Below are positions 28,615-31,536 of a stretch of 64,000 nt of DNA, in pieces (the first letter of the stretch is position 1; the number at the start of each line of letters is the position of its first letter). The stretch lies in the sequence record NC_023719.1; one strand, 5' to 3'. A program made the position numbers and the translations under genes. The notes beneath the pieces were generated by a model. That model was not told the origin of the DNA, did not search any database, and saw only the letters and a list, made by a program, of their open reading frames with translations.

Positions 28615-28911
28615 ATGACAACATTGGAGAAAATTTTATCAAAAGAAGCTTTTAACATTCAAGATTTAGCAGAGGTAACTAAACGAAAAACACAAACTAT
28701 TCGTTCTTGGGAGAAAAAAGGGATTATTAAAGATGCTGATATGCGTAATTCAAACAACTGGCGACAATATTCTAAAGAGCGATTTGTAGAAATCTTAAAT
28801 CAAATTTTGAGTCATCCATGGGAACGCCAAGTAATTAAAAATGTGGCCGAAGTAGAATACGTTATTAATGAATTAACTAACAAACAGGAAAAAGCAGCAT
28901 CTGATGAGTAA
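28615..28911 (+). CDS. MerR-family HTH protein
   Basis: IQDLAEVT....QTIRSWEKKGII...RNSNNWRQYS. Confidence 0.85.
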   Translation: MTTLEKILSKEAFNIQDLAEVTKRKTQTIRSWEKKGIIKDADMRNSNNWRQYSKERFVEILNQILSHPWERQVIKNVAEVEYVINELTNKQEKAASDE

Positions 28912-29875
28912 TAAAGTTCACATTATATTAGATAATGTTTACGCAAAAATTATAGGTGCAACTAAAGATATTGAACATGCTATTTGGAATGAGCTATCAT
29001 TTTTAGTTGAAGAATTCGGCCAAGAGCACCCTAGAAGAAGACATTTATTTAATAGAAAAACCAAAAAAACATATACAGGCTTAGTACCTTATGTAGAAAG
29101 AATTCTCAAAGAAATGCACGTTGACTATGATATTGTTGATAGTCGTGATATACCAGAAAAGAATGCTGATTTTAAATTAGCAGAATTCGTAGATGATGCA
29201 AAAACAATTCCATTGACTTTTAGACCATATCAAAAAGAAATTGTTGACCGATGCGAACCGCGCGAATGTTTACAAGCAGCGACTGGAGCGGGTAAAACAT
29301 TTATGATGGCAGCGATTATTGAAAAATTTAATGTTAAACCAGTATTAGTATTTGCTGATAAAATGTCTTTAGTTACTCAAATTAAAGAAGAGTTTGAAAA
29401 ATTCTTAGGTATTGAAATTGGAATAATTGGTGGCGGAGTAAAGGAAGTAAGAGATATTACAATTTGTTCAGTGCAATCTATGCTTAAAGAAGACGAAATG
29501 CTTAAAGAAGCAAAAATGATTATGTTTGATGAGTGTCTTTCGTATGATTCAAAAGTTTTAATGCCTAATGGTTCTTATGAAGAAATTGGAAAATTAGTTG
29601 AACAAAAATACGAAGGTTTAGTAATGTCTTATAATCATAAAGCTGGTAAAATGGAACCTAAAAAAGTAGTTAGTCATTCGAAAACTCTATTAAGCCAAAA
29701 TAACAAAAAATTTATGAAGCTAACTGTTAAAAAAGCCAATGGTGAAAAAGAAGTTATTGAATGTACAGATAACCATCGAATTTGGTCGGAAGATTCGAAG
29801 AAATATATTCATGCAAGAGATTTAGTAAAAGGACAACAAGTAGTAACAACGAAAGGAAGTTCTGAAAATGGATAA
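28904..29875 (+). CDS. SF2 (UvsW-like) helicase N-terminal half fused to split-intein N fragment
   Basis: Q-motif RPYQ, motif I ATGAGKT, motif II MFDE immediately followed by intein CLSYD. Confidence 0.9.
   Translation: MSNKVHIILDNVYAKIIGATKDIEHAIWNELSFLVEEFGQEHPRRRHLFNRKTKKTYTGLVPYVERILKEMHVDYDIVDSRDIPEKNADFKLAEFVDDAKTIPLTFRPYQKEIVDRCEPRECLQAATGAGKTFMMAAIIEKFNVKPVLVFADKMSLVTQIKEEFEKFLGIEIGIIGGGVKEVRDITICSVQSMLKEDEMLKEAKMIMFDECLSYDSKVLMPNGSYEEIGKLVEQKYEGLVMSYNHKAGKMEPKKVVSHSKTLLSQNNKKFMKLTVKKANGEKEVIECTDNHRIWSEDSKKYIHARDLVKGQQVVTTKGSSENG
29534..29875 (+). mobile_element. Split intein, N fragment (113 aa)
   Basis: Block A CLSYDSKVLM and block B IECTDNHRIW (TxxH), then a stop codon. Confidence 0.92.
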
Positions 29876-30089
29876 TGTAACGCCTATAAAACTAAATGAG
29901 AAAAAACGAACATATAAATATGTTCGAGATGGAAAAATTGTTGAAGTAATTTTAGAAAACGTTATTGAATTAATTGTACGAGAATCTGGTTCACATAAGA
30001 TTAAAACATCTGACGGAAAGCTACATTATTTACCATCTGATTATATTCATATTGAAATAGAAGATGATAAAAAAGAGTGGACAAATTAA
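29868..30089 (+). CDS. Small beta-rich hypothetical protein between the split helicase halves
   Basis: AAAGGA RBS; start overlaps the helicase-N stop; terminator follows. Confidence 0.8.
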   Translation: MDNVTPIKLNEKKRTYKYVRDGKIVEVILENVIELIVRESGSHKIKTSDGKLHYLPSDYIHIEIEDDKKEWTN

Positions 30090-30100
30090 TATTATGCAGC

Positions 30101-30130
30101 AAAGAGAAGGTTTAAACCTTCTCTTTTTTT
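30101..30130 (+). terminator. Rho-independent terminator separating the two helicase halves
   Basis: aaagagaagg-tttaaa-ccttctcttt plus T-run. Confidence 0.9.
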
Positions 30131-30160
30131 ATTGCCCTAATTAAGTATATACAATTATAA

Positions 30161-30193
30161 TGTTAATGATTTTTAAAGAAATACTTATAATAT
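30161..30193 (+). promoter_or_regulatory. Putative phage middle promoter for the helicase C half
   Basis: TGTTAAT-N18-TATAATAT. Confidence 0.55.
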
Positions 30194-30267
30194 ACATATC
30201 TCCATAGAGAGCGAAATATATTTAAATACACGTAGAAAACATATGAGATTCTAAAGGGAGGATTTAC

Positions 30268-30684
30268 ATGTTCAAAAATGTTGCAGAGTTGTTTTCTAAG
30301 AATCTAGAATCAATTCTAAATAAATATCATTTAGACCCTAATATTGATAATTTTAGCTATTGTATGTCAGTTATGCAAAATAACGAACATAGCGAAAAAA
30401 GTTTACAGAATTTAAAAACTGCATTAAATAGTAATGTTCTTTCTAATTTAATAGAAGACTTAGATAATTTGTCTATTATGCTAAATACTTCTAATTTTTT
30501 AATGGATAATGAAATAGATGAAACATATGAATTAGAACAAGATAATAGCGATATTGAAATTGGTACTATTGAAGAAATTGAATATGTTGAAATGTCAGAT
30601 TGTGAATATGAAGAAACATATGTTTATGATATTGGAGTAGAAGACAATCATAACTTCTTTGCTGAAAACACGTTAGTACACAAT
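30268..30684 (+). mobile_element. Split intein, C fragment with about 95-aa N-terminal extension
   Basis: Block F VYDIGVEDNHNFFA and block G LVHN with +1 Cys at 30685. Confidence 0.9.
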
Positions 30685-31536
30685 TGTCACCATTTACCGT
30701 CAAATACAATGAATGAAATAGCTAGAAAAGCTGAAAATGCTTACTATCGTATTGGCGTATCAGCTACTCCTTGGCGGGATGCTGGAGATGATATTTTAAT
30801 TGAGGCTATTCTTTCTAAACGAAAAACTGAAAATTCTATAAATGCTTCTAAATTAATTGATCTAGGATTCTTAGTACCTTGTTCGATTTACTTTGTACCA
30901 ATGAAACAAGTTTTCCCAGGAAAAAGCTATCATAGCGTTTATAAAAAGGCAGTTGTAGAAAATGATAGTCGTAACAAAGCTGCTGTTAAAATAGCACATA
31001 AAATGTTAACAACAAAACAAATGACTACTCTTATTTTGATCCAACAAGTAAAGCATGGGGAAATTTTACAAAAAATGTTATTTGATTTAATACCTGAAGA
31101 GTCGTTTACTGTTACTGTTAAAAATCCAAAAAATGGTAAAGAACAGTTGGTAAGAGTTAGAAATATTGAATTCTTATCGGGTCAAGATGATGCCATTAGA
31201 CGAAAAGCTGTTATTCAAGCAGCTAAAGAAAAGAAAGTAAAAGTCCTTATTGGATCAACTATTGCAGATGAAGGATTAGATATTCCTTCGTTAGACTGTT
31301 TAATATTACTTGGTGGGGGCAAAAGTTCTACAAGAGCCTTCCAACGAATTGGGAGGGTATTACGATTATACACTGATCCAGTAACGAAAGAACCAAAGAA
31401 GAGAGCTATTTGTTTTGATTTTGTCGATTACACGCCTATGCTAAGACGACATTCGAGGGTTCGAGAGAAGTTGTATTTAACTGAAGAGAAATGGGAAATT
31501 AAATTCTTTAATCCAAATTTATTGAACGACGATTAA
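30268..31536 (+). CDS. Split-intein C fragment fused to SF2 helicase C-terminal half
   Basis: GGGAGG RBS; VYDIGVEDNHNFFAENTLVHN|CHH, then SAT (III), STIADEGLDIP (V) and QRIGRVLR (VI). Confidence 0.9.
   Translation: MFKNVAELFSKNLESILNKYHLDPNIDNFSYCMSVMQNNEHSEKSLQNLKTALNSNVLSNLIEDLDNLSIMLNTSNFLMDNEIDETYELEQDNSDIEIGTIEEIEYVEMSDCEYEETYVYDIGVEDNHNFFAENTLVHNCHHLPSNTMNEIARKAENAYYRIGVSATPWRDAGDDILIEAILSKRKTENSINASKLIDLGFLVPCSIYFVPMKQVFPGKSYHSVYKKAVVENDSRNKAAVKIAHKMLTTKQMTTLILIQQVKHGEILQKMLFDLIPEESFTVTVKNPKNGKEQLVRVRNIEFLSGQDDAIRRKAVIQAAKEKKVKVLIGSTIADEGLDIPSLDCLILLGGGKSSTRAFQRIGRVLRLYTDPVTKEPKKRAICFDFVDYTPMLRRHSRVREKLYLTEEKWEIKFFNPNLLNDD

Follow-up and report, generated by a model that had tools for sequence, protein, structure and literature searches.

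In fractured genes of the gp41-1 type, a phage gene for replication or repair is broken at the endonuclease-insertion site, the two halves lie next to each other on one strand, and a basic N-terminal intein fragment (IntN) is paired with an acidic C-terminal one (IntC) (Dassa et al. 2009, PMC2677866; Beyer et al., bioRxiv 10.1101/546465). In the gene-breaking model, the downstream half owes its start to the element that invades the gene (Dassa et al. 2009, PMC2677866). The PolB split intein of the Aeromonas phages Aes123/Aes516 is cysteine-less (Ser1) and has a minimal IntC (39 aa) without a leader, and the Npu/Ssp DnaE inteins are encoded as halves at distant loci, carry no appended domain and consist of an anionic IntN and a cationic IntC that associate by electrostatic "capture and collapse". 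Work on engineered IntC N-terminal fusions and caged split inteins has established that extra polypeptide at this end is tolerated, is removed on splicing and can gate assembly (review PMC11766414).

The helicase locus of the giant Bacillus phage G analyzed here lies in a window of 64,000 nucleotides (the whole stretch of record NC_023719.1 that was studied), whose sequence is 100% identical to that of the phage G record. It shares with the gp41-1-type genes the position of the break, the adjacent halves on one strand and the basic IntN with an acidic IntC, and it is also like them in that the relatives of phage G carry a free-standing gene for a zinc-finger candidate nuclease between the halves, abutting the IntC gene. 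It differs from them in that the host protein is a predicted XPB/UvsW-like SF2 helicase split in motif II rather than the DnaB-like gp41, in that the cassette between the phage G halves has no endonuclease gene, and in that the phage G IntC bears a 95-aa leader, predicted to be folded. With the Aeromonas PolB intein it has in common the charge polarity and an IntC core that is 54% identical over 39 aa, but the extein differs and phage G uses Cys1 and Cys+1. The canonical split site and the class-1 chemistry are those of the DnaE inteins, and a capture-and-collapse association is also proposed for phage G, although with the opposite polarity of the fragments. Solved phage split inteins resemble the phage G intein only weakly in sequence (NrdJ-1, E 3.4e-5, detected through a cis allele). 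The phage G intein is a further member of the phage split-intein and fractured-gene group; no split intein is annotated in the GenBank record of phage G, and a literature search retrieved no paper linking this phage to a split intein, which does not prove that there is none.

The divided helicase gene of phage G and its intein

The features of the locus, in window coordinates, are the following.

28904-29875, plus strand: gp221, annotated as DNA helicase (window position 28904 is NC_023719 position 152904)
28904-29533, plus strand: N-extein of gp221, predicted N half of an SF2 (XPB/Rad25/UvsW-like) helicase, 210 aa, its C-terminal end being motif II (..MFDE)
29534-29872, plus strand: IntN, 113 aa, with Cys1 and block B TxxH at intein residues 78-81, net basic
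29868-30089, plus strand: gp222, 73-aa ORF overlapping the gp221 stop (ATGGATAA), without annotated function and not nuclease-like
30101-30126, plus strand: terminator-like hairpin, 11 bp stem followed by a T run, at the end of the gp220-221-222 unit
30132-30161, plus strand: sigma-70-like promoter match (TTGCCC, 18 nt, TATAAT; 10/12), a consensus match only
30253-30261, plus strand: Shine-Dalgarno sequence AAAGGGAGG, 6 nt upstream of the first gp223 ATG (30268)
30268-31536, plus strand: gp223, with the annotation note "DNA helicase"
30268-30552, plus strand: leader of gp223, 95 aa, acidic, predicted four-helix bundle plus disordered acidic tail, homologous to P0032
30553-30684, plus strand: IntC core, 44 aa, blocks F and G, C-terminal ..VHN directly before the +1 Cys
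30685-31536, plus strand: C-extein of gp223, starting with the +1 Cys (CHHLPS..), predicted helicase C half, 283 aa
31535-31557, plus strand: terminator-like hairpin 3' of gp223, from a sequence scan

The interval 29534-30684, which the first-pass annotation had singled out as a split intein, runs exactly from the start of IntN to the end of IntC. The N-extein of gp221 matched Pfam ResIII (5.8e-19) and also DEAD and is followed by a C-terminal HINT-like stretch, and the C-extein of gp223 matched Pfam Helicase_C (2.5e-11) and follows a segment that matches the C-terminal blocks of the Pfam domain for intein splicing. On the PHROG_16 (DNA helicase) profile the N-extein covers positions 226-385 and the C-extein positions 385-613, and since both exteins meet at position 385 the insertion is exact. 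The junction reads ..MFDE/C....VHN/CHH, with the break inside helicase motif II (DE/CH), and by sequence the ligated product would have 493 aa and a restored DECH motif. Solved XPB and UvsW helicases align on either side of the junction, and the phage G protein can be assigned, from its sequence, to the XPB/Rad25/UvsW kind of helicases.

All the residues expected of a class-1 intein were located. The nucleophile is a Cys at gp221 residue 211, immediately after MFDE, so that IntN begins with CLSYDS; block B is represented by TDNH at IntN residues 78-81, which is kept in the relatives; and blocks F and G end in His-Asn (..VHN), followed by the +1 nucleophile, Cys140 of gp223. The Pfam Intein_splicing model scored 28 bits against the C-terminal blocks when the protein was searched alone and 35.5-35.9 bits in a genome scan (cut-off, 35.8), and PHROG_16259 spans gp221 including IntN. 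About 30 relatives of the phage G intein were found, to which IntN is 55-66% and the IntC core 81-86% identical. Four of them (P0002, P0003, P0009, and P0011) are contiguous 640-650-aa helicases that contain at the same site a cis mini-intein of 153-158 aa, collinear with IntN plus the IntC core and with a linker of 10-15 aa joining the two parts; the intein of one cis allele matches the solved inteins Spl DnaX (1.8e-5) and NrdJ-1 (3.4e-5). These data argue that gp221 and gp223 encode a true split intein of natural origin, divided at the loop where endonucleases are inserted, and we infer that the two proteins undergo protein trans-splicing.

Near-identical variants of the locus are present in contigs from other public runs and studies. 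Among the substitutions listed for these environmental variants, 13/14 are synonymous in the C-extein (13 synonymous, 1 non-synonymous), and the IntC core shows 3 synonymous and 3 non-synonymous changes, gp222 0 and 2, and the leader 0 and 2 as well, a tiny count. The C-extein thus appears to be under purifying selection in these variants, and the pattern, on small numbers, would fit a selected, splicing-dependent helicase with looser constraint on the intein and the cassette.

The two genes lie in different frames with gp222, a terminator-like hairpin and a promoter-like site between them, and the halves of the phage G helicase look like two separate transcription units, judging by consensus scans only. 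The hairpin that follows gp222 (30101-30126) has copies 84-88% identical at positions 221560-221595, 297904-297939, and 405355-405384 of the phage G record, which suggests a terminator type shared across the genome. Neither Pfam nor PHROGs gave a nuclease match for gp222, whose sole relative, P0034 (53% identity; L021:6001-6255), lies in an unrelated context; this suggests that gp222 is a small wandering gene and no component of the intein. The neighbors of P0034, on another large phage-like contig, are NfeD-like and flotillin-like genes.

Two further observations concern inteins beyond this helicase site. Outside the window, at positions 240745-241380 of the phage G record (L006), a second intein splicing domain (Pfam PF14890, 42 bits) was detected within an apparently contiguous open frame of 769 aa. 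Furthermore, a very similar acidic IntC-type block occurs with a different extein in P0024, P0025, P0027, P0028, P0029, and P0031 (582-583 aa), for which PF14890 is the only domain on record; in most of the metagenomic proteins P0024-P0031 (554-583 aa) the block reads ..DNHNFF..LVHN and is followed by Ser. Within this range of numbers, P0026 represents the C half of a split helicase from the same family, and P0030 (554 aa) also contains ResIII. The similar block in another extein suggests, at the sequence level, that the same intein lineage may have moved between host genes.

Charge polarity of the intein fragments

The first-pass annotation had counted about 20 basic against about 14 acidic residues in IntN, and no basic and about 13 acidic residues in an IntC core of about 44 residues, and had proposed that this reversed polarity could render the pair orthogonal to the inteins used in protein engineering. 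The counts were exact: the 113-aa IntN contains 18 K plus 2 R versus 4 D plus 10 E (pI 9.3), and the IntC core contains 0 K/R and 13 D/E (pI 4.05). The polarity itself, however, is no novelty. Negative charges prevail in the IntC region of gp41-1, the reverse of the situation in Npu DnaE (Beyer et al., bioRxiv 10.1101/546465), and in the annotated PolB split intein of Aeromonas phage Aes516 we computed 0 K/R and 11 D/E for the C-intein and 26 K/R and 22 D/E for the N-intein. The same holds for all of the approximately 30 relatives, the cis alleles included, so that the polarity proved to be common in close homologues: the last 40 intein residues contain 0-3 K/R and 9-14 D/E, the IntN of the split relatives contains 20-24 K/R versus 12-16 D/E, and the first 100 intein residues of the cis alleles contain 15-23 K/R versus 12-14 D/E.

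The proposed orthogonality did not hold up as an argument from charge either. A charge-swapped NpuN still splices with wild-type NpuC (Beyer et al., bioRxiv 10.1101/546465), and therefore polarity alone does not confer orthogonality. The polarity of the phage G fragments may aid orthogonality to DnaE inteins, but it makes no distinction from the phage inteins already in use. The charge argument offers nothing new for protein engineering, where inteins of the gp41-1 type with the same polarity are already available.

The leader of gp223 and its relative in a sister lineage

The segment that precedes the IntC core had been described at first as an acidic, helical extension of about 95 aa not recognizable as LAGLIDADG, and this description was borne out. 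The leader has 95 aa with 5 K/R versus 17 D/E (pI 4.2), and an AF2 model built from a two-sequence alignment (pLDDT 74) contains helices at residues 2-19, 27-35, 39-52, and 59-85 and a disordered acidic tail at residues 86-95; a single-sequence AF2 model of gp223 residues 1-146 was poor (pLDDT 47). The leader is very likely translated, because the first ATG of gp223 has a strong Shine-Dalgarno sequence, no such sequence precedes the internal start codons of the gene, and the nearest in-frame stop lies 8 codons upstream of the ATG, the chance of 95 open codons at the local base composition being about 1e-4. An internal start at Met71 or Met79 that would yield a short IntC was considered and rejected, as both codons lack a Shine-Dalgarno sequence and the frame upstream of them runs on without a stop. 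Contigs from other studies carry the leader-IntC fusion with no indels; one of these records spans positions 30313-30898.

Searches for the origin of the leader were negative in most collections. No similarity to LAGLIDADG, HNH or other nucleases was detected in Pfam or PHROGs, and no leader relatives or nuclease links were found in the ESM Atlas. Structure searches with Foldseek and VIA-align recovered nothing but generic bundles of helices, all with Z below 9, a level that the calibration of the search places at background for helical proteins. A tblastn search of 50,697 phage records gave nothing beyond a chance-level match (E 0.09), and no relatives were retrieved by a word search with the leader alone, by an IMG/VR scan or by a JGI metagenome scan. 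The phage G genome contains no further copy of the leader at the protein or DNA level, and only terminator-like hairpins recur there.

Nevertheless, a phmmer search of 1.84 billion representative proteins revealed one relative of the leader besides gp223 itself. This protein, P0032, is a free-standing ORF of 94 aa (pI 4.3; the single member of its 90% cluster) that is 51% identical over leader residues 3-83 (E 1.2e-14) and starts within four residues of the leader N terminus. It is encoded on a metagenomic contig of 23.6 kb that is syntenic with phage G and on which the order of genes is an RlaP-like gene, a 98-aa ORF in the place of gp220, which has the same length, the helicase N half (323 aa), P0032 overlapping the end of the N half, a 294-aa zinc-finger protein, a 172-aa ORF, and the 328-aa C half P0012, which has a short IntC. 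In the maximum-likelihood tree of the C-extein (24 relatives) P0012 groups with phage G as its sister (support, 98/95), and the two C halves are 90% identical.

Because P0032 stands free between the helicase halves of the sister, the leader is best read from these sequences as one of the genes that make up the variable cassette between the halves, in phage G joined in frame to IntC. Two histories are possible: a deletion in the phage G lineage that removed the zinc-finger gene and its neighbor, fusing the small ORF to IntC, or an ancestral leader-IntC gene that was broken again by insertion of the cassette in the sister lineage. In either case, the covalent attachment of the leader to IntC would not be required, since the sister phage has a short IntC and a separate leader homologue with the same intein.

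Allele states and the possible role of the leader

The relatives show how variable this position is. In 15 of the 20 split C halves there is no leader, and the protein starts 3-12 residues before the conserved 40-residue core; the other five have leaders of three mutually unrelated kinds, including that of phage G gp223 (95 aa), that of P0004 (about 155 aa) and that of P0014, P0021, and P0022 (about 105-116 aa, 38% identical among themselves). By BLAST and hhalign, the phage G leader has no similarity to the other leader types or to the cassette proteins of the relatives. Each of the extended C-half genes for which DNA was at hand is preceded by a strong GGAGG and has no internal Shine-Dalgarno sequence, and two lie directly next to the stop codon of a gene for a C2H2 zinc-finger protein, an arrangement that fits the gene-breaking model of Dassa et al. 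The survey shows, too, that the IntC N terminus, the endonuclease site in full inteins, tolerates cargo.

The C2H2 zinc-finger protein of the relatives (282-297 aa; Pfam zf-C2H2, 38 bits) is encoded between the helicase halves, at L004:4106-4999, at L003:33-905 and, on the minus strand, at L009:3010-3858, two of these genes abutting the IntC gene. Its C-terminal part matches I-Bth0305I (3r3p) weakly (E 0.22), which only hints at a candidate free-standing homing endonuclease with eukaryote-style fingers. Pfam and PHROGs identified no free-standing endonuclease gene between the phage G halves, where only gp222 and the leader are found. The three states (cis, minimal split, and split with a leader) are intermingled across near-identical helicases in the C-extein tree; for instance, the cis allele P0011 is sister to the extended P0014, and the cis allele P0002 to the split P0015. 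The cis alleles require at least three changes of state on the extein tree, and therefore switches between the states, or an exchange of intein alleles, have occurred frequently.

Taken together, these results lead us to favor, as the probable account, a helicase divided by a split intein of ordinary polarity, whose leader is a passenger dispensable for splicing. According to this proposal, the basic IntN and the acidic IntC would find each other through their opposite charges and together fold as a HINT domain, and class-1 trans-splicing would proceed through Cys1, TxxH, the terminal His-Asn and Cys+1, as deduced from the class-1 mechanism. The product would be the 493-aa helicase with its motif II restored, and IntN and leader-IntC would be released as by-products, the leader never forming part of the helicase. 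The leader would lie outside the splicing fold, at the IntC N terminus that serves as a permissive endonuclease site, and it would most likely be a tolerated passenger left by a cassette deletion or a fission; the phage G cassette would have lost the gene for the zinc-finger candidate endonuclease that is present in the relatives. The leader is probably dispensable for splicing.

The alternative that survives best, although we regard it as rather unlikely, is that the family formed by residues 1-95 of gp223 and P0032 is a dedicated split-intein accessory that binds or steers the basic, aggregation-prone IntN or times assembly, acting in trans beside IntN in the sister phage and in cis on IntC in phage G. 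Both known members are located inside the helicase fracture locus, which by Rosetta-stone logic could be read as functional linkage, P0032 overlapping the stop of the IntN gene, to which it would be translationally coupled, and the phage G leader being joined to IntC. With a pI of 4.2 and 4.3, the two are acidic versus the pI of 9.3 of IntN; the leader has been retained at 51% identity, and its frame is intact in the environmental variants. However, 15 of the 20 split alleles manage without a leader, some others carry unrelated leaders, and the cis alleles need none. Moreover, the leader has diverged far faster (51% identity) than the extein (90%) or the IntC core, and its structural matches are generic four-helix bundles, with no structural or family link to chaperones. 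The broader proposal, that this family is an unrecognized accessory escorting or timing IntN and that the unrelated IntC leaders are analogous, natural "conditional" split inteins, we consider more doubtful still. Engineered cages mimic the partner fragment, whereas the phage G leader is acidic like IntC and has no similarity to IntN, and a caging role is therefore not indicated.

The leader occupies the position at which endonucleases are inserted, and it could in principle descend from a homing endonuclease or DNA-binding domain once carried by the intein, as what remains of its decayed C-terminal part after an internal stop split a full intein; such a route to split inteins is discussed in 10.1101/2025.01.02.630785. 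This origin is improbable, because the leader matches no nuclease family in Pfam or PHROGs, its predicted fold is all-helical, unlike the LAGLIDADG, HNH or Vsr cores, its homologue P0032 is an independent ORF with nearly the same N terminus, and the search of the 1.84 billion representatives found no contiguous intein with a leader-like insert. Least probable of all is that the halves do not splice and form a non-covalent two-subunit helicase or a decaying locus, a reading that the absence of a homing endonuclease gene from the phage G cassette would favor but against which speak the intactness of every splicing residue, the conservation of the intein core (81-86%) with many relatives, the strong purifying selection on the exteins and the position of the break within catalytic motif II, which must be contiguous.

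The novelty of the locus is modest and lies in the cassette ORF fused to IntC and the recurrence of unrelated leaders, the reversed polarity being already known. If the leader did influence assembly, it would, to our knowledge, be the first case in nature of an accessory or regulatory module serving a split intein. The phage G locus and its metagenomic relatives constitute a natural series on almost identical exteins, which comprises the cis mini-intein, the minimal split pair, the split intein with a gene for a zinc-finger candidate endonuclease, and the split intein with three unrelated IntC leaders, and which is useful for studying the origin of split inteins, the gain and loss of cassette genes and the tolerance of the IntC N terminus to cargo in nature.
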